From NCBI GenBank assembly GCA_965153285.1, contig OZ229116.1: a DNA stretch of 64,000 bases; one strand, written 5' to 3'. Shown here one piece after another: positions 4,389 through 62,275 of this stretch; position 1 is the stretch's first letter, and each line of letters begins with the position of its first letter. A program made the translations under genes and the position numbers. The notes below the pieces were generated by a model. That model was not told the origin of the DNA, did no database searches, and saw nothing but the letters and a program-made list of their open reading frames with translations. This stretch comes from Podarcis tiliguerta. Taxonomy: Eukaryota.

Positions 4389-4647
4389 CCGTATTTTTTG
4401 CTCTATAAGACTCACTTTTTCCCTCCTAAAAACTAAGGGGAAATGTGTGTGCGTCTTATGGAGCGAATGCAGGCTGCACAGCTATCCCAGAAGCCAGAAC
4501 AGCAAAAGGGATTGCTGCTTTCACTGCGCAGCGATCCCTCTTGCTGTTCTGGCTTCTGAGATTCAGAATATTTTTTCCCTTGTTTTCCTCCTCCAAAAAC
4601 TAGGCACGTCTTGTGGTCTGGTGCGTCTTATAGAGCGAAAAATATGG
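4389..4647. mobile_element. Tc1/mariner (Tc2-like) MITE
   Basis: TIRs ccgtattttttgctctataagac / gtcttatagagcgaaaaatatgg. TA TSD. Confidence 0.85.
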
Positions 4648-5511
4648 TACATCTCATCAGATTTCCTCAAGAAATCCCCTAATGTCTTACACTCCTCTTG
4701 GATTTAAAAAATGCATTTGGATTTTAGGGAGGTGGGTGTTTCAAGGAAAACTGTCCCTGGTGCTCCATGATTGCTGTTTTGGATCATGGCCTATAAGTCT
4801 ATTTCTGTCCATCTGCCATCCATCCCAATGTATATGCTACACAGCCCAGTATCGTGATTACTACAGCAATGGTTGTGTGTGTATATACTAGCTAATTTTT
4901 TTACTTGGCAGAGTCGTAGATAGCAGAAGCAAGTGCATATGTCCATATTTTACTCTGCAATTATACAACTGGATGAAATATACAAAAGCGCGTTATATTT
5001 AAGTCTTTGTGTGGGGAGGTTAATAGCCAATGCAAATATTATTCTCTGGAAATTCCAGGCAGATTTAAGGGCAAGGCAGGAATTTATGCTCTGAGCATCA
5101 AGTGCTGACTCACTGTTCTTCCGCCACTATGGTTTCCTACACATACACAATGAAAACATGATTAAAAGAACATTGCATATCCTTCTCTGACAGCTGTGAT
5201 ATTGGGACATAAAGCATAAGCAACATCCATGTGGTGGCCCGTATAAATTGCACCAGATTGGGGGGGGGGGGGAATGCTTGTCTGTTGTGATTGCCATATG
5301 GAAAAGTTTGCATTCACCACACTTCTGAATACCCACATCTAAGCAACACTGGCTTAGTGGTAACGTTACACTTCTTCATGTGGTATATTGCAACAGATGG
5401 CTTGCCACATGTAGGGTGTCTAACTCCTGGGGGTGAGGCAGGCCTGCATGCGCTAAGCCAATGCAACCAGCTACAGCATGCGCTTACACATTTCCTGCCG
5501 CCAAGCTAGAC

Positions 5512-5914
5512 TAGGGTTACCAGACTTCCACGGTTTCCGGGGACAGTCCCCGGATTTGCAAATCTGTCCCCGGACAAATTCCTTCCCTGGAATGTCCCCA
5601 GATTTGCAAATCTGTCCCCGGGAAACATGGCAGCGGCAGCCTCAGTAGCCCAGAGCCAACCTGGTAGCACAACACATCATATGGGGACTTCTGGAGAGGA
5701 AAATGGCAGGCGCCACAGCAGCGAGCAGCTCCTGAAGGCAGCCAGAGCCGACTGCGCTCCCAGGCTGGCTCCAGGCTGCTGGCTGCCACTGCCACCACCA
5801 CTGCCAAAGGGGAACTGGGGACATCCAGCAGTACAGATCTCCTGCCCCCTTCCCCCTTTGTTTTGACTGATGGGGGAGGCTTGGGAGTTGCGGGCGGGCA
5901 TTATGGTAACCATA
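5512..5914. mobile_element. Non-autonomous hAT element (TAGGGTTACCA ends, Tip100-like)
   Basis: TIR tagggttacca / tggtaaccata. Perfect 8-bp TSD agctagac (5504-5511, 5915-5922). Subterminal gtcccc(g/a)gatttgcaaatct repeats. Confidence 0.9.
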
Positions 5915-6007
5915 AGCTAGACCATCCATACTTAATATCCTGCAACATAATCCAAGCCACAATCAGAAAGCATTGGGGAAAACCCACGTGCTGATCAGAT
6001 CACAGAG

Positions 6008-6159
6008 CAGTGGCGTAGCGTGGGGGGTGCAGGGAGGGCCGGGCGCAACATCTGGGGGGGCGCTCGCACTTGCAGCTCTCTGAGTGCTAAAATCCACGGG
6101 TTAGGGGGCGCAAATTACTTGCCTTGCCCCGGGTGCTGACAACCCACGCTACGCCACTG
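6008..6159. mobile_element. hAT MITE
   Basis: 17-bp perfect TIR cagtggcgtagcgtggg. Perfect 8-bp TSD tcacagag (6000-6007, 6160-6167). Confidence 0.93.
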
Positions 6160-6883
6160 TCACAGAGAATAGCTGTGAACCACCCTGATATTCTGTGAAC
6201 CACCCTGAGACCCCCAGGTATAGGGCAGAATATAAATTCAATAAAGAATAATAATAATGATGTCCTATACAGCCATTATACCCATTACATGATGAAAGAC
6301 TTAAACGTCTGGAAACCATTTCCCCCATTTTACAGATGGGAAACACTGAGATTAGTCCCAAGAACAATGAATGACTAAGATCACACAAGGACCTCAGACC
6401 AAGCACATGCATGCATCATATTGCGAAGAAATTAAGAATGTAGACAACAGGGGATCCAGAACTCTTGCTATCTTTCTAACACTCTCCCAACTGTCCTCCC
6501 CAAAACATGACCTGGCTATTTCTTCCTGCCACTGGGTTAGCAATGGCTACCATATTACTCTCTACCACCACTGCTCAGGCTCATCCTTGATGCCAGGCTG
6601 GGGCCACACCAGATGGGTTGGCTGATGGCCATGTCAGGCTGAGTCATCTCAGGCAGAAGCCAAGCTGGGCTGGCAGCTGTGGAGACTTATTTGGGTGTAA
6701 GCCCCATTGAACTGTGTGGATCTTACTGTTGCAGGATTCTGCTGTAAGTATTCCCAAAATAAGGGAGAGCTGGCTAGCCAGCCAGGCAGGCAAGAGGATT
6801 ATGAGCTGAGGAGTAAACGTCAGCATTTTGCATAGCAAGTGAATGCCTGCTTGGTGAAAAATGCCCCTTTCCCAGTTGGTTGC

Positions 6884-7186
6884 TAGGAATGGGTGATTCT
6901 GTCGATTTTAGTTTCTAGTTCTTCCAGTTTTACATTCATTTCTCCACATTTCAACATCAGTTTGCTTTTTTAAAAAGTCCTCATCAAAATTCACTTTCCT
7001 TTCTCCTAGCACGCACATTTTTGTTTGAAATTTTCCCAGTATGCACACTTTTGCAAAGCAGTTTTCCCTAACAGAATGCATCGCTGCCGTGGCACCCACC
7101 ATTTTTCCTCTCCAGAAGTCCCCATGTTGCATGTTACTTTCACACATTATGTATTTTTATGCTCACTGTATGCTACCATGCGCATA

Positions 7187-7235
<49 letters not shown>

Positions 7236-7383
7236 TGCTTGCCTGGGAAACTGCATTGCAAAATTTGGAAAAGTGCAAATTTTGAAGAGTGGCAGTTTTT
7301 TGGTTGGTGCATCACTTCAGAAAGCGGAAACTGAGAAGGGGCATCTTTAATTGTGAACCGGATTTAATTCCTCCCCATCCTTA
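6884..7383. mobile_element. hAT-like TAGGGATGGG family, copy 2, with internal (TG)n at ~7188-7233
   Basis: TIR taggaatggg / cccatcctta. 8-bp TSD ttggttgc / gtggttgc. Confidence 0.85.
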
Positions 7384-9436
7384 GTGGTTGCAAGAGGCAA
7401 ATTGTGAATCCCTGGAGGTCACGGATTTCTCCTGCGATTGGCAAAAGTGCTTGCAATCCCGAAATAAGTCATGAGCGGTGTGTATGTGTGTATGAAATTG
7501 CAAGTACACTTGAGCCCTGTGTTAAAGACAGCACCAAATCCATATTGCCCTTTGAAGGTTTATGGAAAGTCAGTGCATGTGCAATTGCGGTGTTGTTTTT
7601 CCTCCAGCACAGGAGTTCCCAGGATAACACAGATGTCATATGCAATTAAATTAATGTTGTGGGCACAGCTGCTTTGTCAAATAAAGTAAGATAAAAGGAA
7701 ACAATTACCTAATTGAAGAGAATATTTTATTTACCTTGTTGGACAACTTACAGCATGTTGACTCATCCAGTGCCAACGGGGTTTTTTCCTCTCCCCCTCC
7801 TTATGTGTAAAGTCAGGTTTTGCTTATACACATGAACTGCTGGGAAGCATTATCTAAAATGATGAAGTGAAGGAAGTGAGGCAGACAAGAACATTTTGCA
7901 AAGAAAACATTGCATGTCCCACCCCCCCTCCCCACTTCTCTTCCTCACCTTCTTCATAGCTTTCGTTTGATTGTTCTCAAGCTATTAAATGGAATTCGGG
8001 AAATTCAAACAGTCTTCTCTACTGTTCAGCTTGAATACCATAAACCATATCGCTTGGTAAAGAAAGCCATACTTCAGGACCCCACAATGAGGTATCTATT
8101 ACCAGGAGCTGGAAGAAAATGTTCTTTTAATTGGCTACATTTATCTTTAATCCCTGTTTTGACAGAAAGTCTAGCATAACCATATATTACAAATACAAGT
8201 CCCTCTCAAACGCTGGTTCATTTTTATGTTTGACAGAGTCATTTAGAAAAAAGAGAGAGAACGTTGACCTTTTTGGAACCTGGAACGGGGGTTTGGGGCG
8301 AAGGAGAGAGAAATATCTGAATGTGATGTCATTGCAAGGGAGAGGTTTTTTTAAAAAAAGACACAACGGTGGCATCTGTGCGCAAAGTACAAAACAATTC
8401 TTAAAATGGCTCCTTGAAAGTGGCAATAAAACACTAATAAGACCTTTGGGCCTTTTGCTGAGGCAGCTGCAAAAATCACGTTAAGTAATTTCTATAACTA
8501 CTACAGTCATTATAAAACTGATTAAAGTTTACCTACATTTAATTCCTAGAGTGTTTGGAATGAGAACTGAGGAGCCAGATGTGTATGGATCTTGCATGAT
8601 GGATATATTCCATCAAGCATAGCTGTTGTCATGGAAACAACAGGATAAACATGATCTTTAGTGTCTTATTTCTTCACAAAACAGTTCATTTATTTGTCGC
8701 TGCCAATCTAAGCAACGTTCACAGGAATATTCCTTTAAAGGTCATTTTCTCCTCACCCAGAACTCAAGTGTTTTGAACTCAGTGCAACATTTTAAGAACA
8801 ATTTAGCTTTATAGCTTGTCTTTAGATTGATGTAACAGCCAGTCTCCCTTCTCCACCTCCGCCTCCACCCAAAAGAGTCCTGCTGGAGCTTGTAATCGTT
8901 CTGTTTCAATCAGATTGGCTTGCTCCTTCCTATCACACCGAAACAATAAACTGCAGTGGAATTTATGTAAATAAATAGAAGAACCGAGGCTCATTTCTCT
9001 CCCTCCTTGACAATGGAATGATGATGGGAAAGATATGGAAGAGAGATGAAAGGGAGAAGATCATTATAAAAGCTGTGCACAAACCATAGACCTCATCAGA
9101 AATTACTGGACCTCTTATATATGGGGGCATGTGTTCATTTTGCCCCAAATAAAAGCGGACATTGTAAACAGTAGCCAACAGTAGCTGCCAATATTTCCAA
9201 AGGGCTATTAGATTATCTGCCATTCAAGGACCTACATTCGACAAGCATGACAACATGGGGTGTGCAGTGCACCACACAGTTCAGAGCAAAATCCACACAG
9301 GTTTAAAGGGCTCATTTAACAGAAGGTGGCTACAGCATTCACTGGATGACATGGTGTTTCTGGGTTCTGAAATGAGTCCTTAAATCAGGCCAGCCATTGA
9401 CTCTCTTTGGCCTCAAAGAGCAACAAAGGTTTCTAG

Positions 9437-10193
9437 ATTCAGGTAGGTAGCCGGGTTGGTCTGACGCGGTCGAAATAAAATTTAAAAAATTAAAAAATTG
9501 TCCAGTAGCACCAGAACAAACCAACAAAGTTTGTTCTGGGTATAAGCTTTTGTGTGCATGCACACTTCCTTCAGATACACTGAAACAGAAGTCACCAGAC
9601 CCTTATATATAGTGGGAGGGTGGGGTGGGTCTGAATAGAGATTTTGGATTTTTGTCTCATTACATATGCTAAAGCTATTTTCGGTCATCTACATACTATC
9701 ACTTGCTTTTCTCTGTAGGACTAATTGCAGTTGTTAAGTGTCGTTAACAGGTTTACCATACCCATTGAGTCAATCACCCATCTCCTACCACCCTTCTGGG
9801 GAAAAACCCCACCCCACCCTCCCACTATATATAAGGGTCTGGTGACTTCTGCTTCAGTGTACAGTGGTACCTCAGGTTACAGACGCTTCAGGTTACATAC
9901 ACTTCAGGTTACATACGCTTCAGGTTACAGACTCCGCTAACCCAGAAATAGTACCTCGGGTTCAGAACTTTGCTTCAGGATGAGAACAAAAATCGCATGG
10001 CGGCGGCACAGCGGCAGTGGGAGGCTCCATTAGCTAAAGTGGTACCTGAGGTTAATAACAGTTTCAGGTTAAGAATGGACCTCCAGAACGAATTAAGTTC
10101 TTAACCCGAGGTACCACTGTATCTGAAGAAGTGTGCATGCACATGAAGGCTTATACCCAGAATATACTTCGTTGGTCTCTAAGGTGCTACTGG
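9437..10193. mobile_element. Penelope-like element remnant with two inverted pLTR ends
   Basis: 14-bp TSD acaaaggtttctag (9423-9436, 10194-10207). Minus-strand pLTR end 9437-~9629. Plus arm begins with ORF end GLNRDFGFLSHYIC* (9628-9672), then TATA (9826-9834), a hammerhead-like motif and the ggtctctaaggtgctac terminus. Confidence 0.9.
9862..10119. mobile_element. Tigger/pogo-like MITE family A, nested in the Penelope pLTR
   Basis: TIR cagtggtacctc(a/g)ggtta. TA TSD. Homologous to 53337, 55848 and 57956. Confidence 0.92.
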
Positions 10194-10913
10194 ACAAAGG
10201 TTTCTAGGTCAGGCTGGAATATTGCAGGGTGACAAGAAGTCTCTGCTGACTCATGAGTCTTAGCTCTCACACATGATTTCTGTCCCTCGTTTTATGGCTG
10301 CCTGTGGCCCAGCAATGGCAAAACATGGGTGAAGAGGGCCAGCACCTTCCATTTCCCCAGCATATAACAGGTTGCCATTTCCAGTTGGAAAAGCACCAGC
10401 ATAATGCCCTCTCTGCAACCCTAACCAAATGAAAAGAGGGGCTTCCATGTCCTGCACCAGCTGAAGCGTCTGGGAAATCACCAAGCAGGGCATGTCACAG
10501 AGCACAGGGCAGATATATATTTTTAAACCATCTGTGCCTGGAAATATATGCAAGGAAATGATGATTTATTTCCATTTTGTGAGCTTTGATTCTGTTGGCA
10601 GGGGTACCCAATGGCAGTGTTAGAAAGGGGCTTGTTCTTGCGATTTGTCATTCGCAGGAATCAAACTAGAGTGAGAATTCTTGCACTCCCCTTACTTTGT
10701 GATTTATACACACACATCAGTCACTTAGACATTATTGCGTGGCACAATAAACCTGCTACTCTCTCTGACATTGACCTCACACAGTGACATCATGCTATGT
10801 TCATATCCCAACATGTTGCAGGAACTCCTAGCTAATACCACTGTTTGAGCCACTGGACTAGAGCAGCAATTCCAGCAGAGCTTTAGGGCATCTTGGACAA
10901 AGTGAACTCTGGC

Positions 10914-11416
10914 TAAGGATGGACAAATCCAGCCATTTCAGTTTCTCATTTTCCTGATCTTAAGTTCAGTCCATGTCATTGTAAAACATTTCGCACCAGA
11001 AAAAGTTGGCATGAAAATTCATATCCATTTTCATACACATTTTCATATATTATTATTAGTTATTAAATTTCTATACCGTCCCTCATTCGAGGATCATGAG
11101 GAGTTTATAATATAGAAACACAAAAAAATACATACTATAGATTTTTAAATTATAAACACACACAAACACACAATTTTGCCTACTATAAACATTACTGCAA
11201 ACAATTTCAGCGTAATAGAATGCATTTTTGTATGTAATTTCCCCTAATATACACATTTTTGTATGCATTCTTTGGTTGGTGAACTGCATGACAAAATTCA
11301 GAGAAGAGAGAATTTAAAAGGAGAATCGTATTTCAATCTGCATATTGGTTCAGGAAGTGCTAATTTAGGGAAGCTCATGACAAAATGCTAACTAATGAAT
11401 TTCTCCTCCATCTGAA
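10914..11416. mobile_element. hAT-like TAGGGATGGG family, copy 3
   Basis: Starts taaggatgga. 8-bp TSD actctggc / actctgga. Confidence 0.82.
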
Positions 11417-11453
11417 ACTCTGGAGATCTGCCACCCACCGGTGTGCCCTAGAG

Positions 11454-11589
11454 CAGTGTTCCCCAACCTTGGGCCTCCAGCTGTTTTTGGACTACAATTC
11501 CCATCATCCTTGACCACTGGTCTTGCTAGCGAGGGATGATGGGAGTTGTAGTCCAAAAACAGCTGGAGGCCCAAGGTTGGGGAACACTG
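11454..11589. mobile_element. Palindromic hAT (Charlie-like) MITE
   Basis: Nearly fully palindromic 136 bp with cagtgttcccc ends. Perfect 8-bp TSD ccctagag. Confidence 0.93.
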
Positions 11590-12052
11590 CCCTAGAGGAC
11601 TTACATTGCAGTGTGAGCAACAATGGGAAGCAGCAGTTATTGTGAACTGCCCTGATATCTACAGATGAAGAGCAGTATACACATTTAATAAATAATAATA
11701 ATAATATTCTGAACTGAGTCAGTCAGCTGGGTCTTGCCACCATTTGATTTTCAAAACAACAATAAACAAACCTATGGTCACGTAAAGCATACTCAATAAA
11801 CACACAAGACATAACCGGCTGTGTTTTTAGATAAATAAGGTATACTATTCATGTATCAAATCATAAATTTCAACGGACGTAACTCATAAAGTTCAACAAA
11901 CAAACAAAGCAGAAGACCCAGTGGATCAGATCATTCTCTAGTCAGTTCATGCATAAGGTCCATCCGTGTAATAGTGTCTATTCCACCTGTCTGTTCATAA
12001 GGTCCAAACAATCCACATGAAAGGTTGTAGCAGTTCCACAGAATCCTTTCAC

Positions 12053-12126
12053 AGAGTCTAAGACAAGGATTTCCAGAATATTGGCCTTGTTTCGCCGTCC
12101 TGGGCTTCATCAGTAGTTAAAGCTCT
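12053..12126 (-). ncRNA. Type I hammerhead ribozyme motif
   Basis: Minus strand reads AGAG-CUUUAA-CUA CUGAUGA A GCC-CAGGAC-GGC GAAA CAAGG...CCUUG UC^U UAG-A-CUCU. Core CUGAUGA, GAAA and GUC are intact. Stem III is 6 bp, stem II 3 bp, and stem I has an internal loop. Confidence 0.8.
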
Positions 12127-12253
12127 AAGCAATACAAATAAATACAATATCGTGATCTCACACCATTATACAGCAAAAATAATATAAAACCATAAATAAC
12201 TGTACATACCATATGTGATATTACAGGACAGTGGATCTTATGGCATAGTAGTA

Positions 12254-12619
12254 CAGTGGTGCCCCGCAAGACGAATGCCTTGCAAGACGGAAAACCCGCT
12301 AGACGAAAGGGTTTTCCATTTTTCAATGCGCTTCACAGGACGAATTTCTCTATGGGCTTGCTTCGCAAGACGAAAATGTCTTGCGATTCTTGCGATTTTT
12401 TTCCGCTCCCCACCCCCTTTTTCTAAGGCACTAAACTGCTAATAGCCTTTTAGCAGCTAATCCGCTAATCCCTTAAGCCTTTAATAGCCGCTAATAGCCG
12501 CTAAACCGCTAATAGTGCTAATCCACTAATCCGCTAATAGGGTTGCTTCGCAAGACGAAAAAACCGCTAGACGAAGAGACTCACGGAACGGATTCTTTTC
12601 GTCTTGCGAGGCACCACTG
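12254..12619. mobile_element. Tigger/pogo-like MITE family B
   Basis: TIR cagtggtgcc(c/t)cgcaagacgaa. TA TSD. Homologous to 32837, 56941 and 61692. Confidence 0.93.
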
Positions 12620-12626
12620 TAGTAGT

Positions 12627-12979
12627 GGTAAAGGTAAAGGTAAAATGACCCCTGACCATTATGTCCAGTCGTGGCTGACTCTGGGGTTGCGGTGCTCATC
12701 TTGCTTTATTGGCCGAGGGAGCCGGCGTACAGCTTCTGGGTCATGTGGCCAGTCTGACTGAGTCGCTTCTGGTGAACCAGAGCAGCACACGGAAGCACCG
12801 TTTACCGTTCCACCGGAGCGGTACCTATTTATCTACTTGCACTTTGACGTGCTTTCTAGGGTGGCAGGAGCAGGGACCGAGCAACGGGAGCACACCCCGT
12901 TGTGGGGATTCGAACCGCCGACCTTCTGATCGGCAAGTCCTAGGCTCTGTGGTTTAACCCACAGCGCCACCTGCGTCCC
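12627..12979 (-). mobile_element. Sauria SINE (Squam1)
   Basis: tRNA-derived head with A box TGGCGCTGTGG and B box GGTTCGAATCC. BovB-like 3' end with (ACCTTT)n tail. TSD ~agtagtagtagtg. Confidence 0.95.
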
Positions 12980-13749
12980 TTCCAGTAGTAGTAGTAGTGA
13001 TTTGATTTTCCGCAATATGATGGGTGAGGGAGGGAACTGAAGGGGCAGCAGGACAGCCATCATCTCTTGGGCCATTCATACGTCCAGCAGCTGCTGAGGA
13101 ATGGCAACACCTGCTCCTCTTGCATGTTTACCTGGCTGGTGGGCATGTCAGCAAGAGCATGATGCCCACGTGTGACATCATCTGCAGACACCAGAGCTTA
13201 CAGCTCTCCTGAAGAGAAGATTCAAAGGAGTCACAGCCAGAACACTGAATCCTACAGAGATCCAGCAGGCAGCTTCTCTGCCCTGTTTAGTGGGTATGTT
13301 GGGCCAACGCAGGATCTTTTAATTACATAAGTAATTATCTTCTCGTGGCCCCACTGGCAGTTCTCTCTTGACATACTGATGTGACTCAGCATGCCCTTGG
13401 GGAATTAATACTCCAGCACATGGCAGCTTGGGAGAGCTGTGATTTCACTTTGGGGTGGTTAATATAGAAAACAATTAACTGCTTTTGCTTTCCAGCGACA
13501 GTAAACTGAATTCCCCCTGACAGCCAGCAGAAATGCCGTAGGCAGAATCAAGTTGATTATTTAAGGTTTAAATGCTTTCTTTGCAACAGTTTAACGTTGC
13601 ATACATTCTGTTAGATCTAAGCTTATAAAGGCAGACTACTGCTGTTTACAAAAGCAATTCTTAAAAAAAACAAAAACCAACCCACAAGTTTCCCTGTGCC
13701 AAAGCATGTAAAGTGCTGAGTCGCTACTACAAAGAATAGAAACAATGGG

Positions 13750-13800
13750 CTCTTCTTCTTCTTCTTCTTCTTCTTCTTCGTCTTCGTCTTCGTCTTCTTC
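13750..13800. repeat. (TCT)n/(TCG) microsatellite
   Basis: Direct read. Explains the poly-Ser in ORF 13745-14158. Confidence 0.95.
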
Positions 13801-14399
13801 CCTGAAGCAATTTAATCTTTTAAGAATGGTTTTCTCCCACTCTCTTCTCCAAATTTGCTATGAATTGAAATTCTCCAGGTGTTCTGTGAGCAATATAAAT
13901 ATTGAGAGAAGTTATTTCCTACCTGTAGTGCCGATGAAATTCTTTATTTTTAAACCAAACATGCTTGCTTTTGAAGAACGAGGCAGCCACTCTCTACTTC
14001 TTCAACAGGATATCAACATGAGCAAGGGAATGAAAACAGAGGTCAAAGCCGTTTCCAGAAAAGGGGGTCCATTTCTCCTGAAACATAAACATTTAATGCT
14101 GAAGGATGTCAAGAAGCTAATAAGAGCTGGTGTGGTCCAGCCAATAGAGTATGTATGAGATTTGGGGTAATTTTTGCCATGGACATTTAAGAGTCATCCC
14201 CCCCCCCGGAACGAATGACCGCTCTTCAAAGTCTCTCTCCTCCCCCCCCCCCCCGGTCAGCAATTTGGATTGTAAATGCAAGAACTTCCAGTACCATTTT
14301 AAGCAACAGTTGTGCCTATGCCCTTGGGGGACTATGTTCAAATCCCTTTTTTGGTGGTGCAAACTGCATTGCATTCGTCAGAAAGTATTTTACAATTCA

Positions 14400-29181: not shown

Positions 29182-30723
29182 GTAGTGTTGGTACTGAACT
29201 CCACAAACTTGTCTAGAGACCCATTTTAGAATGCCCTGGCTCTGAGATGGGTAAGATGTAAGAACAGCTCGGGCCTTCTCTGAGGCTTCTTTATCCCTTT
29301 CTATGCCTGGTGACATCAGTGGCCATACAACAGGGCTTTGTGTTAACTGTGCCCCCCTCCAAGAGTGGATCTGAGCCCTCTCCTTCTTGGGTGATTCTTA
29401 GTGTGAGTTGGGAGGCTTATTTAGCACCAAAGCCTTCAGTGTTACCCTAACCATTGGATAGTCCCTCTTGTCTACAGGGATGAGGGATTTCACCTATGAT
29501 TTTCAGGATTTATGTGGACTCTGCAACCCCTTCCAAGGAAATCAGTGCAATGAAGGATGGACTCTAACCCTATACTAGTTCAGTGTGCTATATTGTTGTT
29601 CTTAGTCTGCGACTGGGTTCTGTTTTATGTTTTTCAAAGAAGCATATACATCATCAGGTAATACATTCCATGCCATTCATTTCCCCGCTCAAACGCGGAG
29701 CCTAAAAGCAACCAGAGAGAGAAACACCTTTCAATCCATCATCAGACTTTACTTAAACAAGGCCAAGCACAAGCCTTCACTTGGCATTTCGATGGCACCA
29801 AAACTCTGAGAAAAGTTATATACCTGAGATTTCATATGCAGAATTATGACCTCACTTTTTAAAAAGAATCGTTGGCAATATTTCTGGAACGAATTCAGAA
29901 AACGCCATTTTCTGTAGGAAACACATTTCCAGAAAACTGTTTCCTACATGGAGAAGCACTGAATAAGTGGAATGACAAATGTTCTCCTTCGGAGGAAAAT
30001 AAGGGTGGTGGTTGGGAAAACCTTTTCATCTGAAGTTGTTCATATTGGCAGCACCATGGATTTGTGAAGGTTCCAAATACTCATTCCTGCATCATTTGAG
30101 TTCTTCATTAAAGCCTGATTGGAGTAAAGCCCTCACCCAACAAGCTGATCTGATTCAGCAGTGTTTCAACACGATGTGTCTCACTCAGTGAAGTGAATGC
30201 AGAGCTGTTTTAGAGTCAAGACAACTGGCTTTCTTTCTACCAAACAAGAAGGGCTGGGTTAGCAATATCCATGCTTTGCATCATTTGGAGCAGGTTCACA
30301 GAAGTTGGTGAGACTATTCTTGAGCCAATGATTTGAGGCAAGGATCACCAACTTCCTTGGGCCTGTGGGCGTATTTGCAAAGTAGAGCACCAAGGGCATC
30401 ACACATGTGCCATAATATCACATGCCCAGCAACCATGCGTGTGCGCACATGCAGGCACAATGAAAAGCCTTGGCAGGTGCCAAGGATTGCCTAACGCTGC
30501 CACTGGCTCTTCCTGAAATCACCCAAACACTCTGTCATCCTACTCTGGAACAAAACCACCTGCCTCAAATATAAAGTATTGTTTCTCCTTAGCCTGGTCC
30601 TCCTGTTTCTTTACTTCACAGTCAGGGGCCCAATCAACAAAGCAATTCCTCTTGCAAAAGCTCCCATTCATTTCAGTTGAGCTTCAGTGGAGTTCATGAA
30701 TTCCTCCCAACACACATGCTCAC

Positions 30724-30989: not shown

Positions 30990-32836
30990 TAGCGATACTT
31001 CCATCAACACAGTTTTTTAGGAATACACACACAAGCAATTTCCATGTCAAGAATTAAAGCAATGAAAAGACTTATGCCCATATTTACTTACTTATGAATC
31101 AGACATGGGTAAGTCAAGAGACCTGGAAGCACAGAAGCAGGACCATGTTTGACTTGAGAATCACGCCCATGTGTGATTTCCATCACAGTACTTGTGAATA
31201 ACCTTCCACAAGTGGGGGGGAGTGACAACAATAATGGTCTGCCTTGTAACTTATTTATTTCAACAACAACAACCTGTTAGGGGTGGGTTTTTCCTTGATT
31301 ACGTGCTCTGGTCCCCATAAAGGCAGAAATCAGAGAGATTTTTTAATTCAGAGACTCAATAACCTTTTAGATAATAAGGCTGTTAACAGGCTTCTGTAGC
31401 CAAAGGGGCATGAGCTCTGCCTTGGCTAGTAGCCTCTTGGGTCTGTAGATAAAAAGTGGTGTGGAAGGTTACAGAAAGGAACTGAATCAAAAGAGCAGTA
31501 CCTTTCAGCTCCCAAAAACTTTCATATCATCTCCCATTGACCCTCGAAAGCTCTTAACTCCCACTTCCTACTAGAACTTTCCCCTTTCAAGACAATTTAT
31601 GCACTCTGACATAAACTGGTTAATGGGGCCATTCTACCACAAATGTGGAAACAAGTTGATCTTCATTGACCTAATATCTTGTATTAAAGCTTAGTAAGTT
31701 TTCTGTCAGGTCAAAGGATACGTCCATGAAACTCCACGGGTCCTCAACCACAAAATGGCCCTGAGGTAACATTCAGTATTTGATGGATTCTGCTGTGTGT
31801 ACAGTTCATCCACCACAGAACCATTCACTGTACCCGACCGTAATGTTTCTACTCAACAAGCTAATTAAAATTTCCTCTATTATATACAACATTAATGATG
31901 AGGTAATAGTTTATCACATAAATGTCTGACGTTTTTGGCATGAGGGAGCCTGCTCTTTTTGGAGGTTGAAATGACAGAGGTTACATAAATGCCAGTTATT
32001 CATTTTACATCTGTAGAAGATCAACATTAAAATGAGAAACCAATCCGCCAAGTCCTGAGAACTCCGAACAAGAGTAGCTAGCAATCAAGCCCCCATGAAT
32101 ATAAATGAGATGTTTTATGATGACTAAAGCTTACATAAGAAGTTGTTAGTTGAACTGGTCTACTCTTGGGTTTTTTGTTTCTCTGATTATGGGCCACATT
32201 CAATTATTAGTTGTACTGACTTCAAAAAAAGGCTGGTGCCCTTCAACTTAAGTGCTGCCTTCGGTTATGAATTCAATCATGGGAGCGAGTTGCTGAGGCC
32301 ATATTTTATTACCAGTATTTGTGCATCCATGCTGGCTTCATAAAGCTTTACAGGGACAATTCAATGTGTTTATGTTGACCTTTAAATCCAATGTCAAAGG
32401 GTCAGTCTACTCCAATATAATCTTCATAATCATCATAATCTTGCAGCTATCCAGAAGGTAGCTCTATCAATGATAGAGCATCTTATTTGCATTTAGAACA
32501 GCCTGGTCCAACGTTTGGCCTAAGGGCCACTTGTGGCCCTCTAGGCTTCTTCTTTTTTTGGCAGCCTGGAGAAATATTTGACACCCACCACCCCAGCCCT
32601 TACACAGCCTTCCCAAAACTTGGTATGAAAGGCACTGGGCTTTGGGAAGGAGACATGAGGGCTCTGCTCTGACAGGGTCCTAGACTCTTCCTGACTCTTT
32701 CTCAAAGCCTAGTTATCACTTTTCCAGCTTTGGGAAGAAGGTTGGTGGTTTCTAGAACCCTTGTGCCTCCTTCCCAAACACTGCACCTCACTTAGCCAGC
32801 TTTGGGAAGGCAGTGTGAAGACTCCATATTGAAGTA

Positions 32837-33203
32837 CAGTGGTGCCTCGCAAGACGAAAAGAATCCGTTCCGCGGGTCTTTTCGTCTTGCGGTTTTTTCG
32901 TCTTGCGAAGCAAGCCCATTGACGGAGTAGCGCTATTAGCGCTATTGACATTTTAAGGGCTAAAAACAGCTTTTTAACGCTTGGGAGATTAGCGGTTTTG
33001 CTGCTAAAATGCTTTTAGCACCTTAGCGATTCAAAATAAGGGGTTTTGGAGCGGAAAAAAAATTCAAAATTTTTCGTCATTTTTCGTCTTGCGAAGCAAG
33101 CCCATAGGGAAATTCGTCTTGCGAAGCGCCTCTGCAGACGGAAAACCCTTTCGTCTTGCGGGTTTTCCGTCTTGCGAGGCATTCGTCTTGCGGGGCACCA
33201 CTG
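32837..33203. mobile_element. Tigger/pogo-like MITE family B (divergent subfamily)
   Basis: TIR cagtggtgcc(t/c)cgcaagacgaa. TA TSD. Confidence 0.92.
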
Positions 33204-34884
33204 TACATTGATTTAGAAGATCTCAGGTTCAATCCCCAGGTAGGGTTGGGACAGAGAGACACTCACACCATCCGAAACCCTGGCAAACCACTGCCAATTG
33301 GCATTGGTAGTCCTGAGCTGGATGAACCAATGGCCTAACTCTGTGTAAGGCAGCTTCCTATCTGAGAACACCCACTTCCAGTTATGGCCACCTACATTTA
33401 TAACAAAATTATCAGCTTACAGTTATACAGACAATACAAATGCACATAGATGGGTCTTGTCTACAGCCAACCCACAAGTCAAGGGCACCTTTTCTATGGA
33501 GATTTGTGAAACGCCTATGCTTGAGCTTCATTAATAAACATGGTGTGGTTTTATTTGAACTAGGCCTTGATGGCGGGATGAATTATTGCAAATAAATAAA
33601 CATGCAGCAGAGTCCTCTGCATATTTCCTCAGAAACTGTCCAAAAGTAACAATTGGTTAATGTTTTTATTCAGTGCTTTTTTCTGGGAGGGGGGATGCAT
33701 GGCTACGCATACCCCTAAACATTTTTTTTAGAAAAAAAGCACTGATTTTATTAAGACCATGTGACATTTTAGATAGTCCCAATAAAGGTATTGCTGTTAC
33801 TTTTGTTTTTCTCAAGGGCTCATCATGTCTACTTACCTTAACTATATATTTTTTTAATCCACTAAATTCATTTGGCCTTATTCCTATGCAATTGTGCATT
33901 GAATTGCAACCAATTCATTTTAACAATAATAATAAATCTGTATTTGTTACAACTTTATGTTTTCTTCCAGTGCAGTCTATACCTGGCCATGTAGAATTAC
34001 ATGCTATCACGTTCAATGCCCTTTACACTCCAGTAAGTGCATTTCAGAGTGCAGCCTAATGCAATGCCTTTGCATCCTCTACTTCAGTATCGTGTCCTGT
34101 TATTCATATCCAAAGAGCTGCTGCTGACAGTTCATTCTGAACACTTTTCAAAAACAGCCAAACAATAACAGCACAGGTCTAATCCTTCATTGCTTCTGAT
34201 ATTAAGCCAACCCTGGCGATGCCATCTCAGTTTTGGTCCTATTAACACTGAGTGAATAGGAGAGTTTGCTATGGAGACGGGTTAAAAATGTAACCATAAA
34301 TAGAAGAGCCAATCTTTCAATAATATCAGTTTAAGAAAACAAGAGGTGACTGACTGTTGCACTGTTGTAATGAAATTACCCATGTATGGCAGTTTCGGTG
34401 AGGTTTTGTTTGTTTTTCCATGGGATCTGAGGGCATCATGCACACAGACTTTACCCGAGGAATGTATCTGAATGAATGATTTCATTTGTTCCTTCTTAAA
34501 AATGGATAAAGTCATTGCCTTCTGCTTAGTGTACCAAACAGCTTAAAAGCAAAGTGACGGTTGTTTTCCTATTAACACTAAATGGTCATTAACCCAAAGA
34601 TCAAACGGAGGTGAGTCAAGTAGCCCCTCGTTCCTCAGAGACTCTCTCCCGATGCTTATCCCAAAAGGATTAGAGACCGGCCCTAATGCCTGGCCAGAGA
34701 GCAGTGGAGCTGAAGCGAGAGGATGGAGCCACTGCTTCATTCAGAGCTCGCCAAGGCCAGGGCAGAATGTGGGAGACAGGGGGTTTTTGACCCTTCGCTT
34801 TTGCTGCACCAGCTCCAGGATGGCACAGCAAAGAGGCCCAGAGTGAGCTCCTCTCCTGCTACTGCAACAGTTTATGTGATTACG

Positions 34885-36593: not shown

Positions 36594-36726
36594 CAGGCAT
36601 CCCCAAACTCGGCCCTCCAGATGTTTTGGAACAACTCCCATCATCCCTAGCTAACAGGACCAGTGGTCAGGGATGATGGAAATTGTAGTCCCAAAACATC
36701 TGGAGGGCAGAGTTTGGGGATGCCTG
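36594..36726. mobile_element. Palindromic hAT MITE
   Basis: caggcatccccaaactc TIR. 8-bp TSD ccatacac / ccctacac. Older relatives at ~4255, 44680, 48160, 53598, 54990 and 57795. Confidence 0.9.
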
Positions 36727-37985
36727 CCCTACACAAATCCAGGGTCCCTTATATATAGTTTTGTACATTTCTCATTTCTGCCTATTTCTAGGCATAGGAT
36801 AATCATGAAATTCACCAGTTAAAACTTCCCCAGCTACCAGTGATTAAAAGCTCCAGATAACAAGGCAGAGGGTACTTTAGTTTTATCATAATCAAATTTC
36901 AAGAGGGGAACAGTACAACCACAATGTAGTTTTTTTAAAAAAATCCTATTCTTCTTAGTCAATGAACCATGTAATTTTGGAATACTGGATATCCTTTTAA
37001 ATAAATCACATTTGGCAAGCCCATTCCTGCAACTTCAGTGTTTTGCAAGAACAAGAGTCCAAGCTCAATAATCATGCTACTACTGAAGGACCTAGATTTG
37101 GTGCAACTGATACATGAATCACATATGGAGATGGAATGAACCATCAGATAAGACCCATAGCAGTTGTTGTCTTCTTGTTTCAAAGAACAACCTCGGTAAG
37201 GATGGGGCAAGGCATCCATAGCACCTTGGACAGCACCATGCAGAGTTCAGGCTGGAGACTCCATAAGCGCAGGGTGCAAATGTTGCTTCAGCAACAGTCT
37301 AAGCCTTAAATAGGAAGTTCAACTCTATCTCAGCTGCTAGTTGCACCTTTGGTAAGATAAGCCTCTTCATGGGTTCCAACATGCTTTAGCAATTGTTGGC
37401 TTTTCCAGAGCAGGAGAGACTGTGGAGTCACTAAGGCTTCTGAACTAGAGTTCTCAGAGTCAGAGGAGGGCAACACAACATCTTCAGGATGCAGAGACAC
37501 AGGCACATTGGGCTCCTGTTGTGCAATAGCTTGAGGGCAATTCTTTCTTCTACTTCTCCTGACAGGGACTGGTCAGATGTGGAAGAGTAGTGGAGAACAC
37601 CTGGCCAGGAATCCTCGAGGCAAAGTGTAGGAGAGGAAAGTTTGGACCCAGGTTTGTGGTGGTGGGAAACAAGACACACCCCAGGAAAAGAGAAGAACTG
37701 GGAAATATTGAAGGATGGGGAACAGGAGCAAGCTGCTTGATGCACCAGTCCCTTGGCAGTCACCCTAGGCAAAGGGAGGGATCTGACAAATAGAAAACAA
37801 ACTAGAGGTGGGAGGGGCACTCTGGGCACCACATCCTGGATCTCTGTGTTTGTTTTTATGCTAACAAAGAAGCTATTAGCTGAAGTGAGCTGTGTGCCTC
37901 ATTTCTCTCTGCTCTTTGCCAAGTGTGCTTGTTGTCCGCTCCCCCTCCTGAAGAAACGAGTCTTGAGTCCAAATGGCAGCTGTTT

Positions 37986-38408: not shown

Positions 38409-38853
38409 TTAAGCACTTGCTCTTGGACTTCTTTTGCAGTTGCTACCCAGTTAGTGTTCATTTTTTTTCTGGGGGAAAAAGCTGTCCTGCTCAACCTGAA
38501 GAGTGGTTCTGATAGGTGTCAGGCTCCCTGTACTAGTGGTCTGCTGGAATGTGTAGGTTGCTTTATTTTTTGTTTGTCTTCAACTTTTTGTGTTTGTGGA
38601 GACTGCCAAAGCCGTCTTCTCTGTTTTCTGCCTGTTCTTACGTGTTTCTGTGTGAATCAATGTGGATCTTTTTTGCCAGCTGCTCTGGTCCTGTGTTGGT
38701 TTGCTCAGAAAATAGACTGAGTGGGGACAGGAAATAGTAGCATACTCCTCGACTCTGAACATTTCCTGCCTTGGATGCTAGGTGATAATATCAGCCCATG
38801 TGATGGCCTGACATTCATGGTAAACATGTAGCCAGACCCTGACCTAGAATGTA

Positions 38854-39209
38854 AGGTAAAGGTACCCCTGCCCGTACGTGCCAGTCTTGCCAGACTCTAG
38901 GGTTGTGCGCTCATCTCACTCTATAGGCCGGGATCCAGCGCTGTCCGCAGACACTTCCGGGTCACGTGGCCAGCGTGACAAGCTGCATCTGGCGAGCCAG
39001 TGCAGCACACGGAACGCTGTTTACCTTCCCGCTGGTAAGTGGTCCCTATTTATCTACTTGCACCCGGGGGTGCTTTCGAACTGCTAGGTTGGCAGGCGCT
39101 GGGACCGAACGACAGGAGCGCACCCCGCCGCGGGGATTCGAACCGCCGACCATGCGATCAGCAAGTCCTAGGCGCTGAGGTTTTACCCACAGCGCCACCC
39201 ACATCCCAC
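38854..39209 (-). mobile_element. Sauria SINE (distinct subfamily)
   Basis: A/B boxes and ACCTTT tail. Perfect 13-bp TSD gacctagaatgta (38841-38853, 39210-39222). Confidence 0.95.
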
Positions 39210-53578: not shown

Positions 53579-55362
53579 TATAAGATTCTATAGTTCAGCA
53601 GGCATGAACAATCTTTGACCCTCCAAATGATGCTGAACTACAGCTCCCATCATCCCTGATCATTGACCCTGCTGGCTGGGACGTATGGGAGTTGGAGTCC
53701 AACAGCATACAGTTGGCCACAGAGGTTCCCCACCCCTGACATAATGTCCTTCTGTGCATACTTCAATGAATGGGAGTAACACAAAACCTTAGCTGTGCCC
53801 TTGAGCAAGTCCCACACATTTCAGTGAGCATTGTACTGGAGACATTCCTGATGGATTGCACCCAGAGATTCCAGGCTGCAGCTAAAATCTAACAGAGTAC
53901 ATATTTAACATAAACTTACAATGAGGGGGTATAAATAAAATACAACACAACAAACTGGGAGCAATTATTTTGAGAATTTACTGCTTTTAATCCCCAAACA
54001 ATACTTAGAAGCCAACAAAACGAATAGGGAAGGTTTAGAAGAGAAAATGAAAGGTCAATTATAGGGGTGAAAAGTTCTTCTGAAAAGGTTGTTTTTATTA
54101 ATTTTTAGGTTTAAGATGACTAGGAATGCAGCATAATGAAGAAATCATTGGGATCGTAAAAACGTTTTCCCCCTCATGGGAGATTTTTCATGGGGTTCAT
54201 TTTTCTGCTGTCAAAAATGGGAGAGGCAAAAAAGAAAAGAAAAGGAATTATGCGTGTTTTGGATTTAAATAGAAATAGTTCTCCACATTTTGCCTATCTT
54301 CTTTTCCTGCCTTAAAAAACAAGGAAGCACAAATAAATATCCATTTCAAATTGTCCTTTATTTACACATATATTATCATCATCTTCTTCATCATTGTCGT
54401 CATCATTTACTAAGGATAGGACAAGTATTAAAAAACACAGACATATAAATAAATAAACCATGCCCATACCCCAAAGTGGCAACCCATTTTTTGTCATTTG
54501 TGGGACCCAACTCAGCTGATCCAGAAAACCTCCTTACCTTTTTGAAAAGGGTACTAGTAGCAGAGGACAAGAGAGCCTACAAAAACCACCTGAGGCCTGG
54601 ACAATATCCCTGGCGAATATTCACAAATCACCTCAAGGTTCTCTGAGTATTCTACCAGGAATGTTTGTGGAAGTCTCATAGTTTTTGAGGCCACCAGGGA
54701 GTTGTTCTCTCACATCCATTATTCAATGGAGTACCCTTCCCAACCAGCATTGATAATGGGCTTGGATGATGGGAGTTGTAGTCTAACAATATCGGGGGGG
54801 GGCACCATCTTAGGGAAGGCTGCTATAGAGAGAATGGCTTACATGACTCCAGAAAAATATAACTTTACATAAGGGTGGTGATACTTCTAATGCTCTTCTG
54901 AATTTCTTCCTGGATTTTGGAGTTCTGAGCTACCTGGTTTTGGTTGCTTCTGTGTTAGATTTAGTGTCCAGACACACTGCTTTCCTCATCCAAGGGTGAG
55001 GAACCTGTGGACCTCCAGGTACTGTTGGACTCCAACTCCCATCAGCCCCAACCAGTAAGGTTGACAATCAGGGAGGAAGAGAGCTGTAGTCTAGTAACAT
55101 TTGGAGGCCCAAAGGTTCCTTAATCAGTTGCAAACTACATAAGTAGTCCTCAGTGAAAACTGGTGGTTCCACATAGTGCTTAATATAATGATATAGCCCT
55201 TATTTTTAAAAAAATCCTAGCAATTCCCATTCACATGGGCAAGATTGTGTTTTTACTCAGAAGTCCCATTAGATTTATTCCCTAGAAAACGAGCTTAGGG
55301 CTGCAGCCTTCAGTTGGTGGATATATCCCTACTTCCCACAGAAGTGTCCAGGGCTGACTCCC

Positions 55363-56089: not shown

Positions 56090-56940
56090 TATACACTTGA
56101 AAGTGATTATTTTGTTGTGCACAAGCTACCACAGCATAAAACAGAATGGAAAAGGGTGGCCTTTGAATGAACAACACACACACACACACACACACAGCAT
56201 GTGCTTGCTGAGAGAGCTGCAAATTCTCTCTCACTTTCTGGTTCCAACCTTGCTCTTTGGTCCATTACCACATCCCCCCTTGAACTCAAATGAACTTCCA
56301 CAGCGAATGACGCCAAATGGGCAGTCAAAGGATTCTGTGGCTACGGCCGTACATTTGTCCAAGCTCTTGCCTTTGAATGCCCAATACTCCTTTTTCTTTT
56401 GCTTGTCACTGAAACCATCTTAACTTTTAGGGACGCTTAGACGGTAGACATATGTAATAAAATCCTGACAGGTTTTTTTTAAAAAAATGAAAAGCAACCT
56501 TGGAAGGCTGCAAGTTTGAATGCAGTGGGGAGCATGAGGAGCTTAATCCATTCCCCACAACCCTTTAGCCCCTGGCTCAGAATTACCTCTTCCCCACATT
56601 GCTTGCCATCTCTCTATGGGGTCCTAGAGTCATTGGCTTGGGCGAGGGCATACTGCCATTCCCCTGCTTTTGCTGGAAGGAGAGCGCTGATAGCAACTAG
56701 GCCCTTTGAAAGCATGAATCCAGGCGCCCCCATTTCTGCTGCCAAATTTGTCTACCAGTTCTAGAAGAAAGCCTGTAGCAGATTGATTTAAAGGGGGGCA
56801 GAGAATCAGGGAACTTGCGTAGTGGCAGTGTTAGAAACTCAGATATATATGGTAGGCGCCAAGCGGTTCCTCAAACCAGGGTTACAGTCACAAAAACAGA
56901 ATGCCTAGTTGCCATTTTTAGGCCAGACAGCTCGGAATTA

Positions 56941-57308
56941 CAGTGGTGCCTCGCAAGACGAAAAGTATCCGTTCTGTGAGTCTCTTTGTCTAGCGGTTTT
57001 TTCGTCTTGAAAGCAAGCCCATTAGCGGATTAGCGGATTAGCGCGATTAGCGGTTTAGCGGCTATTAGCGGCTATTAAAGGCTATTAAAGGCTATTAAAG
57101 GCTTAAGGGATTAGCGGATTAGCTGCTAAAAGGCTATTAGCAGTTTAGTGCCTTAGAAAAAGGGGGTGGGGAGCGGAAAAAAAACCCCAGGAATCGCAAG
57201 ACATTTTCGTCTTGCGAAGCAAGCCCATAGCAAATTCATCCTGCGAAGCACCTCCAAAACGGAAAACCCTTTCGTCTAGCGGGTTTTCCGTCTTGCGAGG
57301 CACCACTG
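56941..57308. mobile_element. Tigger/pogo-like MITE family B
   Basis: cagtggtgcctcgcaagacg TIRs. TA TSD. Confidence 0.92.
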
Positions 57309-61318: not shown

Positions 61319-61676
61319 GTAAGGTAAAGGTAAAGGGACCCCTGACCATTAGGTCCAGTCGTGACAGACTCTGGGGTTGTGGCGCTCATCTCGCTTTATT
61401 GGCCGAGGGAGCCAGCGTACAGCTTCCGGGTCATGTGGCCAGCATGACTAAGCAGCTTCTGGCGAACCAGAGCAGCGCACGGAAACGCCGTTTACCTTCC
61501 CACCAGAGCGGTACCTATTTATCTACTTGCACTTTGACATGCTTTTGAACTGCTAGGTTGGCAGGAGCAGGGACCGAGCAACAGGAGCTCACCCCATCAC
61601 GGGGATTTGAACCATCAACCTTCTGATTGGCAAGTCCTAGGCTCTGTGGTTTAACCCACAGGGCCACCCGTGTCCC
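61319..61676 (-). mobile_element. Sauria SINE
   Basis: Near-identical to 12627-12979. (ACCTTT)n tail. Confidence 0.95.
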
Positions 61677-61691
61677 TTAGAAGCTGACTTA

Positions 61692-62048
61692 CAGTGGTGC
61701 CCCGCAAGACAAATGCCTCGCAAGATGGAAAACCCGCTAGACGAAAGGGTTTTCCATTTTGGAGGTGCTTCGCAGGACGAATTTCTCTATGGGCTTGCTT
61801 CACTAGACGAAAATGTCTTGCGATTCCTGGGGGGGGGATTTCGCTCCCCACCCCCCTTTTCTAAGGCACTAAGCTGCTAATAGCCTTTTAGCAGCTAATC
61901 CGCTAATCCCTTAAACCTTTAATAGCCGCTAATAGCACTAATAGCGCTAATCCGCTAATCCGCTAATGGGCTTGCTTCGCAAGACGAAAAAACCGCTAGA
62001 CGAAGAGACTCACGGAACGGATTCTTTTCGTCTTGCGAGGCACCACTG
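61692..62048. mobile_element. Tigger/pogo-like MITE family B
   Basis: Very similar to 12254-12619. TA TSD. Confidence 0.93.
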
Positions 62049-62275
62049 TATATTGAATTGGACCATTAAGCCATAACTGGCAGTGACTCTCCTGGACTTC
62101 AAACACAGTTCTCTCCCAGCCCTACCTGGAAGTGCCAGGGACTAAACCAGACAGCTTTTGTATGCAAGAAAGAGGCTCTACCACTGAGCCATGGTCCCTT
62201 GCCTAGGACCTGAGTGCAAGAGCATTCTCCTGAGTGCCATTTCCAGCAACAGGCATGGTCCCTCCAACACTGGAA

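Follow-up and report, generated by a model that had tools for sequence, protein, structure and literature searches.

A hammerhead-shaped motif in a lacertid lizard retroposon, probably a relic or weak form of a retroelement hammerhead

In a 64,000-nt stretch of the genome of Podarcis tiliguerta (GenBank assembly GCA_965153285.1, contig OZ229116.1; here called the window), the minus strand from 12126 to 12053 holds a complete hammerhead-shaped sequence of type I topology, with helix I open and helices II and III closed by loops. This motif is carried in sense orientation by a non-coding retroposon of about 515 bp, of which lacertid lizard genomes contain hundreds of copies. Judged by its sequence, the motif likely descends from a real retroelement hammerhead. 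With somewhat less confidence, we favour an origin in the master copy of this retroposon family, from which the hammerhead sequence would have been inherited, the family most likely being derived from, or mobilised by, a Penelope-like element (PLE). What the window holds today probably is a relic or a weak retroelement hammerhead.

The hammerhead-shaped motif

The original prediction, made from the letters of the window, had named a CUGAUGA box, one extra A, the stems, a GAAA box and a GUC triplet, and each of these elements is found on the minus strand where it had been placed. From 12126 to 12053, the letters are AGAG CUUUAA CUA / CUGAUGA / A / GCC CAGGAC GGC / GAAA / CAAGG CCA AUAUUC UGG AAAU CCUUG U C / U UAG A CUCU. 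The window is free of N runs, and the parts of the motif are the following.

12053-12126, minus strand: whole motif (direct reading, pairs checked), the sole descriptor match in the window
12107-12113, minus strand: core box C3 to A9, CUGAUGA (direct reading)
12106, minus strand: extra unpaired A after A9 (direct reading)
12094-12105, minus strand: helix II, GCC/GGC, 3 bp, with the 6-nt loop CAGGAC; −2.4 kcal/mol for the hairpin alone
12090-12093, minus strand: core box GAAA, that is G12, A13 and A14 plus A15.1 (direct reading)
12063-12090, minus strand: helix III hairpin with 6 bp ACAAGG/CCUUGU, the 4-nt bulge AAAU, 3 bp CCA/UGG and the loop AUAUUC; −7.0 kcal/mol
12062, minus strand: cleavage-site base C17, from the core numbering
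12061-12062, minus strand: predicted scissile bond between C17 (12062) and U1.1 (12061), following from the core numbering
within 12126-12053, minus strand: proximal helix I, with A-U, a bulged U, U-A and C-G (3 bp)
within 12126-12053, minus strand: internal loop of helix I, CUUUAA / A
within 12126-12053, minus strand: distal helix I, AGAG/CUCU

The proposed structure has 19 pairs, each of them standard. The motif has every part of the generic core, namely C3 to A9, the bases G12, A13 and A14, the pair A15.1-U16.1 (A12090 with U12063) and C as H17 at 12062. With the catalytic core complete, the type I shape that had been proposed holds up, and the predicted cut between 12062 and 12061 agrees with the core numbering. 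Departures from the textbook core are found at two places, the extra A (12106) between A9 and G10.1 and the bulged U beside the 1.1-2.1 pair. In helix III, A15.1-U16.1 is the outermost pair and is followed by CAAGG/CCUUG, the hairpin measuring 28 nt in all.

How often such a motif arises by chance was estimated with a descriptor of our own, deliberately as lax as the candidate. It allowed zero or one extra base after A9 and required at least 3 bp in helix II, at least 4 bp beginning with A-U in helix III, an H17 other than G, and at least 3 bp in helix I with one bulge allowed. On both strands of the 64-kb window, its single match was the motif at 12053-12126. In random first-order Markov sequence (40 Mb), the descriptor found 11 cores, or 0.28 per Mb per strand. 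Sequence with independent and identically distributed (i.i.d.) letters (1 Gb) gave 89 cores, which corresponds to 0.089 per Mb per strand; with helix III set to at least 6 bp, the number fell to 11 cores, or 0.011 per Mb per strand. Matches of such quality are expected about 0.001-0.005 times per window and dozens of times per lizard-sized genome, and because of the latter number the locus alone cannot settle whether the motif is real.

For the plain string CUGAUGA-N-GAAA-N-GUC, the window has 2 occurrences where 0.5 are expected, which means little alone; the other occurrence, at 29611-29657, fails the helix descriptor and was rejected. A minimal hammerhead pattern had no match in the window. 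Exact-pattern scans of metagenome (twice), viral and prokaryote collections gave 0 matches and have no bearing on rarity, these collections holding no lizard genomes. Taken by itself, this locus stands out without settling the question; what tips the balance is that a whole repeat family has the motif as its majority sequence.

The motif in its repeat family

The host element lies on the minus strand between two copies of an exact 11-bp target-site duplication and is interrupted by a short interspersed element (SINE) and a miniature inverted-repeat transposable element (MITE), both described further below. Its own parts are these.

11753-12253, minus strand: body of the host element, a non-coding retroposon with the minus strand as sense strand; 501 nt, 3' end at 11753
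12984-12999, minus strand: 5' start of the element, C followed by (ACT)5, directly inside the upstream target-site duplication
12620-12626, minus strand: further ACT-repeat bases, ACTACTA, 7 nt, between the nested SINE and MITE
13000-13010, no strand assigned: upstream copy of the target-site duplication, ATTTGATTTTC on the plus strand, an exact 11-bp direct repeat
11742-11752, no strand assigned: downstream copy of the target-site duplication, exact 11-bp repeat, adjoining the family terminus seen in independent copies

Four sequencing runs (DNA run X1, X15, X19 and RNA run X23) were aligned to the element at a minimum of 80% identity, which gave 1,085 records; the family variants reported here are those of 40 out of 171 variant rows. 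About half of the words sampled from 11742-12249 were found in runs under seven organism labels. DNA run X1 contributed 774 contigs at 80% identity or more, and their summed depth amounts to 4,500-14,000 over most of the element against 9-21 per contig. From these unitig depths, we estimate a family size of roughly 300-900 copies, a rough figure. Many contigs stop matching at 11752-11765 and run on into unrelated, mutually different flanks. Since contigs end there beside heterogeneous flanks, the 3' terminus at 11753 is common to independent insertions. On the 5' side, X1 depth drops 5-10 fold beyond 12116, which is a pattern of 5' attrition if the minus strand, that is the hammerhead strand, is the sense strand. 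Paralogues furthermore show three kinds of junction to the opposite strand (11852/12249, 11961/12163 and 12082/12249) and internal deletions from 12117-12124 to 12210.

The hammerhead core is the family majority sequence. Within the motif, 12075 is the only position among the rows listed at which the window copy departs from the family majority. There, 73% of X1 depth has G for A on the plus strand; the C of the family majority makes a CpG and this copy has U, to which it owes an innermost A-U pair of helix III that is peculiar to it. CpG transitions at 12074, 12094 and 12097 are among the listed family variants in the motif, and the two CpG sites of helix II, 12094 and 12097, have decayed in 16-45% of X1 family depth. 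Some paralogues carry a non-CpG change, C3 to U at 12113. The GAAA box (12090-12093) shows no majority variant among the family rows listed. Over these rows, 5 of 74 positions vary inside the motif and 35 of 434 outside, that is, the motif is not conserved beyond its surroundings. A subfamily diverges upstream of 12116, and the 5' strand of its helix I reads GAG CCUGUU CUA in place of AGAG CUUUAA CUA. The distal GAG is kept there, whereas 4 of the 5 positions that follow the first base of the loop beside it have changed. The window copy itself differs from the family majority at no fewer than 22 of 508 positions. Two younger elements have broken into it, and it is an old insertion that is now dead.

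Covariance models and folding

No Rfam family reaches its score at gathering thresholds anywhere in the window. In permissive searches (E ≤ 10) of 301 nt and of 91 nt, no hammerhead model is among the matches listed, which extend down to about 11 bits; the models meant are type I, Hammerhead_1 (RF00163), types II and III, Hammerhead_HH9 (RF02275) and Hammerhead_HH10 (RF02277). The Rfam type I model, to which the original prediction had looked for confirmation, hence gave no match even at this level among the matches listed. Those that were listed, a mir-322-like hairpin (18 bits) and a viral pseudoknot (11 bits), were both judged to be noise.

Folding of the 74-nt RNA gave a minimum free energy (MFE) of −16.3 kcal/mol (z = −1.0) for a structure that is not a hammerhead. 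The hammerhead fold has −5.7 kcal/mol and thus lies 10.6 kcal/mol above it. The competing MFE structure contains a 6-bp hairpin in which GCUUUA, from the 5' strand and internal loop of helix I, pairs with UGAAGC and so sequesters N7, G8, A9, the extra A, G10.1 and C10.2. In a second competing helix, CCAGGA of loop II pairs with UUCUGG of inner helix III. Ensemble pair probabilities are at most 0.2% for the three pairs of proximal helix I, 2% for helix II and about 6% for helix III. For the family-majority form, with C and not U at 12075, the hammerhead fold has −4.5 kcal/mol as opposed to an MFE of −13.4 kcal/mol.

The stable stem III of the original prediction was borne out. This cis-closed hairpin folds alone with −7.0 kcal/mol (z = −2.2; 7 of 200 shuffles fold as well), and it is found in the MFE structures of the 181-nt and 300-nt contexts. 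The helix II hairpin alone reaches −2.4 kcal/mol, and helix I consists of three pairs and a bulge. By these energies, helix III is the sole solid helix of the three, with helices I and II very weak. A Watson-Crick contact of 3 bp between loop I and loop II (CUU or CCU with AGG) was considered as well and not used; by our estimate, about 0.8 such contacts are expected by chance for two 6-nt loops. Nearest-neighbour energies ignore tertiary contacts and hence do not exclude activity, yet they contradict the description of the motif as near-canonical, which had to be given up: helices I and II have 3 bp each, no Rfam hammerhead was listed and the fold lies far above the MFE. Detectable protein-free self-cleavage by this copy is doubtful, and efficient cutting of host transcripts by it is unlikely.

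Family transcripts

RNA run X23, a set of raw reads under another species label, contained 190 family reads. They come from both strands and cross 12061/12062 without a dip; no excess of starts or ends is seen anywhere in them, and none at 12061/12062. No X23 read was 99% or more identical to the window locus. The missing read ends may be taken as weak evidence against cleavage. They weigh little because the hammerhead of Poseidon, a PLE of Anolis, which cleaves in vitro with protein, leaves none either.

One paralogue is abundant in the transcriptome-like runs X15 and X19 (two species labels), with contigs of 1,563 and 1,790 nt at depths of 53 and 122. These contigs run uncut through the site but bear C3 to U at 12113. 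The paralogue, which aligns to 11817-12249, also has an extra A after 12059 and the inverted junction 11852/12249; it resembles a fold-back copy that is expressed and whose core is disabled. One X19 contig (535 nt, matching 11951-12061) turns into unrelated sequence upstream exactly at 12061, the predicted cleavage site. A copy of cleaved RNA would resemble this, and the break may be a coincidental 5' truncation; as one of about 160 loose ends, it was not counted.

Origin of the motif

Several traits make the architecture of the element PLE-like: the sense strand carries the hammerhead, which is some 310 nt away from the fixed 3' end (and about 190 nt from the 5' end), the 5' end is a microsatellite, the paralogues have inverted junctions, and the core has the extra A. 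The target-site duplication and the 5' attrition are likewise compatible with a PLE. By analogy with known elements, this architecture suggests that the family most likely is PLE-derived or PLE-mobilised. In the transcript of the source element, the motif might have trimmed or marked the RNA near the 3' region of the template, as has been proposed, though not proven, for PLE hammerheads. Helix III would close in cis and take the place of dimerisation. Any cleavage would probably be slow and need help, as in the protein-assisted hammerhead of Anolis Poseidon, given that helices I and II are limited to 3 bp each and that the competing fold is far more stable.

A number of observations weigh against such an origin. 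Helix III of metazoan PLE minimal hammerheads is absent or a palindromic 1-2 bp, while the motif has a cis hairpin of 6 + 3 bp, and their helix II measures 6-8 bp compared with 3 bp here. The standard Rfam hammerhead models (I, II, III, HH9 and HH10) do not recognise the motif. Target-site duplication, 5' truncation and inversions also fit a SINE mobilised by a long interspersed element (LINE). No coding sequence for a reverse transcriptase (RT) or a GIY-YIG domain is present in or beside this copy. The AUG within CUGAUGA opens a 59-aa open reading frame (ORF) at 11931-12110 on the minus strand, the other frames being closed. It has no Pfam match, and a word search with it came back blank, although that search was length-limited and blind to full-length PLE proteins. 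With phmmer against 1.84 billion proteins, the ORF product gave 3 matches to TPR-like or repeat proteins, each in 4-6 stretches, which we rejected as artefacts of composition or repeats and not homology. Neither ten large ORFs of the window nor the two ORFs overlapping the element gave a Pfam match. As a side observation, the opening of the 59-aa ORF in CUGAUGA echoes the layout of Anolis Poseidon, in which the ORF starts inside the hammerhead.

Among the alternatives, a chance look-alike survives best, although we hold it to be clearly less probable than descent from a retroelement hammerhead. The family ancestor would then have happened to hold CUGAUGA, GAAA, GUC and short complementary stretches, and the family RNA would never have cleaved itself. 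The lax descriptor rates of 0.09-0.28 per Mb per strand (0.011 with at least 6 bp in helix III), corresponding to dozens of matches per genome, agree with this, and for roughly 2 Mb of repeat-family consensus, a rough estimate, one would expect 0.05-0.2 chance matches in the consensus of some family. The lack of an Rfam hammerhead match fits a look-alike too, as do the 10.6 kcal/mol separating the hammerhead fold from the MFE, the helix I and II pair probabilities of at most 2% and the missing extra conservation of the motif (5/74 against 35/434 positions in the rows listed, 40 of 171). On the other hand, all 11 invariant core bases are in place, together with A15.1-U16.1, C as H17 and three helices in register. 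A look-alike would also have to fall on a retroposon's sense strand, about as far from the 3' end as in PLEs, and to include the unpaired base typical of PLE hammerheads. Moreover, the diverging subfamily has kept the distal helix I pairing GAG/CUC next to a loop changed at 4 of 5 positions after its first base.

The original prediction had gone further and proposed that this copy could cleave itself as a monomer in the manner of fast type I hammerheads, a loop of helix I contacting loop II, and could cut any minus-strand transcript crossing it. We regard this as improbable. It is true that the core of this copy is intact, that helix III is stable in cis, that the internal loop of helix I faces the 6-nt loop II, and that helix III of this very copy has gained an inner A-U pair through CpG decay at 12075. 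Helices I and II, however, have 3 bp each; the 6-bp competing hairpin takes up G8, A9 and G10.1 and the second helix takes up loop II (−16.3 against −5.7 kcal/mol); and the matches listed at E ≤ 10 include no covariance model of a hammerhead. Family RNA reads cross the site without a dip and without a pile of ends at 12061/12062, and the X23 reads do not include one at least 99% identical to the locus.

An animal retrozyme, that is, a non-autonomous element whose RNA is cut at two hammerheads, circularised and spread via small circular RNAs, was rejected as highly improbable: a type I hammerhead within a small non-coding repeat and the presence of family members in the transcriptome-like assemblies of two species (X15 and X19) would suit it, but each element has a single ribozyme, the window has no tandem copy, head-to-tail or back-joined forms are missing among the joints listed (1,085 records), and the copies end at one fixed, linear and not permuted 3' terminus.

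Returning to descent from a retroelement hammerhead, we may speculate, with considerable reserve, that lacertids carry an undescribed non-autonomous PLE offshoot. In such an offshoot, a built-in helix III hairpin would have replaced the dimer-dependent helix III, so that a single unit could act, the short helices I and II would be held by a new loop-loop or protein contact, and the RNA would have a 5' end at 12061. If active, the motif would add a vertebrate case in which helix III closes in cis and helices I and II are unusually short. Control of cleavage by monomers and by dimers could then be compared, the motif could be used to test whether the template RNA is defined by the ribozyme, and it would offer a small natural scaffold. 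If inactive, it shows that a hammerhead found in a repeat at the level of a descriptor can mislead. Hammerheads on animal retroelements as such are well known already. For the host, a copy that is old and interrupted and whose fold is disfavoured will probably not matter to transcripts that cross it.

Nested elements and neighbouring repeats

On the minus strand, the order between the target-site duplications is C(ACT)5, SINE (12983-12627), ACTACTA, MITE (12619-12254) and body (12253-11753). The two insertions are the following.

12254-12619, no strand assigned: nested MITE, a later insertion, with terminal inverted repeats starting CAGTGGTGCC and TA flanks; 27-nt arms, 93% complementary
12627-12983, minus strand: nested SINE, a later insertion that reads as tRNA-derived, with an (ACCTTT)n tail (direct reading)

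The MITE family is about 370 bp long and has 4 copies in the 64 kb, the other three (61690-62050, 56939-57302 and 32835-33206) being 82-90% identical; short internal repeats of the GCTAAT type are found in the family. Further SINE copies, 72-87% identical, lie at 61321-61678, 38853-39207 and 62276-62656. ARAGORN called no tRNA in the nested SINE (12627-12983). At about 61.3-62.05 kb, a SINE and a MITE are again adjacent, in the order opposite to that of the 12-kb locus, which may reflect a shared target preference or a coincidence. A second copy of the host element was not found in the window by blastn (word sizes 11 and 7) or nhmmer.

Inside the element and downstream of the hammerhead, an exact 11-nt direct repeat, CATAAGGTCCA on the plus strand, is present at 11952-11962 and 11996-12006, 44 nt apart. 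Directly 3' of the hammerhead, 12008-12054 on the minus strand folds into a stable hairpin (−11.9 kcal/mol, z = −2.2), to which the sub-threshold mir-322-like Rfam match belongs (18 bits, E = 0.45). This hairpin overlaps 12031-12081, one of three family depth peaks, which we took to mark well-conserved 31-mers. If Anolis Poseidon is a guide, the hairpin could belong to a region for protein binding or for the start of reverse transcription. Just 3' of the flank of the element, 11448-11595 is a near-perfect palindromic fold-back repeat of about 148 bp with an 84% match to its own reverse complement, and further copies of it are found in the window at 36600-36731, 55002-55117 and 53620-53702.

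Relation to known hammerheads

Metazoan PLE hammerheads are of type I, lack helix III, act as dimers and combine a large helix II with a short helix I, and in these minimal hammerheads a base is unpaired at the 5' end of helix II (PMC4209133). The motif shares with them (Cervera and de la Pena 2014, PMC4209133; Anolis Poseidon PAc, Frangieh et al. 2024, PMC11167929) the type I topology, the core of CUGANGA and GAAA, and an unpaired base, here A12106, between A9 and helix II. The contrast to Penelope hammerheads that the original prediction had drawn is hence correct in part: the stable helix III sets the motif apart, while the extra unpaired base after A9 is a feature described for just these hammerheads. 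Further differences are a helix I of 3 bp with an internal loop and a family for which neither an RT/GIY-YIG ORF nor an arrangement with a pseudo-long terminal repeat (pLTR) came to light.

At the level of the element, PLE insertions occur as 5'-truncated, tandem or inverted copies (PMC4209133, PMC8557442). An inverted copy and a short tail are often present, and microsatellites are preferred (PMC8557442). The lacertid family resembles metazoan PLEs in the sense orientation of the hammerhead, in dispersed copies that are 5'-truncated and often joined to inverted copies, and in the position of the ribozyme, some hundreds of nt before the 3' end of the insertion. The hammerhead of Anolis Poseidon is found at the junction of pLTR and ORF, with the ORF beginning at helix II, and reverse transcription starts internally, downstream of the hammerhead, with insertions ending a few hundred nt past the ribozyme (PMC11167929). 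The minimal Poseidon template requires the first 172 nt of the ORF; its hammerhead is protein-assisted and dispensable for insertion in vitro, and no RNA-seq read ends mark it (PMC11167929).

Fungal and protist PLE hammerheads have a large helix III, and that of Serpula is active as a single motif (PMC4209133). With this group, the motif has in common the type I topology, the large helix III and the absence of a recognisable canonical loop-loop contact (PMC4209133). In contrast, these PLEs are telomere-associated, endonuclease-deficient and non-animal; in sequence they are unrelated to the motif, whose helices I and II are shorter.

Metazoan retrozymes consist of tandem repeats of 170-400 nt with a hammerhead in each and give circular RNAs (PMC7229834). 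In canonical metazoan type I hammerheads, helix I has 6 bp, helix II 4 bp, the interacting loops are conserved, and helix III has 1-2 bp with a small palindromic loop (PMC4209133). Topology, core and animal repeat context are alike in the motif and in the canonical examples, i.e., Schistosoma Sm-alpha, newt and axolotl satellite or retrozyme repeats and the amniote intronic HH9 and HH10. Unlike the motif, these have about 6 bp in helix I, about 4 bp in helix II, interacting loops and a short helix III; many of them stand in tandem arrays that yield circular RNAs, and their covariance models match nothing here. The motif has 3 bp and a bulged U in helix I, 3 bp in helix II and 6 + 3 bp in helix III, and hence is not a canonical metazoan type I hammerhead.

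De la Pena and Flores reportedly described, in 2001, a hammerhead with an additional A between A9 and G10.1, that of chrysanthemum chlorotic mottle viroid (CChMVd), plus strand, which is said to be natural and active. This CChMVd (+) hammerhead resembles the motif in having an extra unpaired A, tolerated there, at the same core position; it differs as a viroid ribozyme of type III, in which the helices are well formed and the tertiary contact is defined.

As tested, the motif falls outside Rfam type I, HH9 and HH10 and outside the PLE minimal hammerhead in its strict sense. It is best filed as a variant of the retroelement-borne type I hammerheads, with a PLE-like extra base, a helix III closed in cis, and minimal helices I and II.

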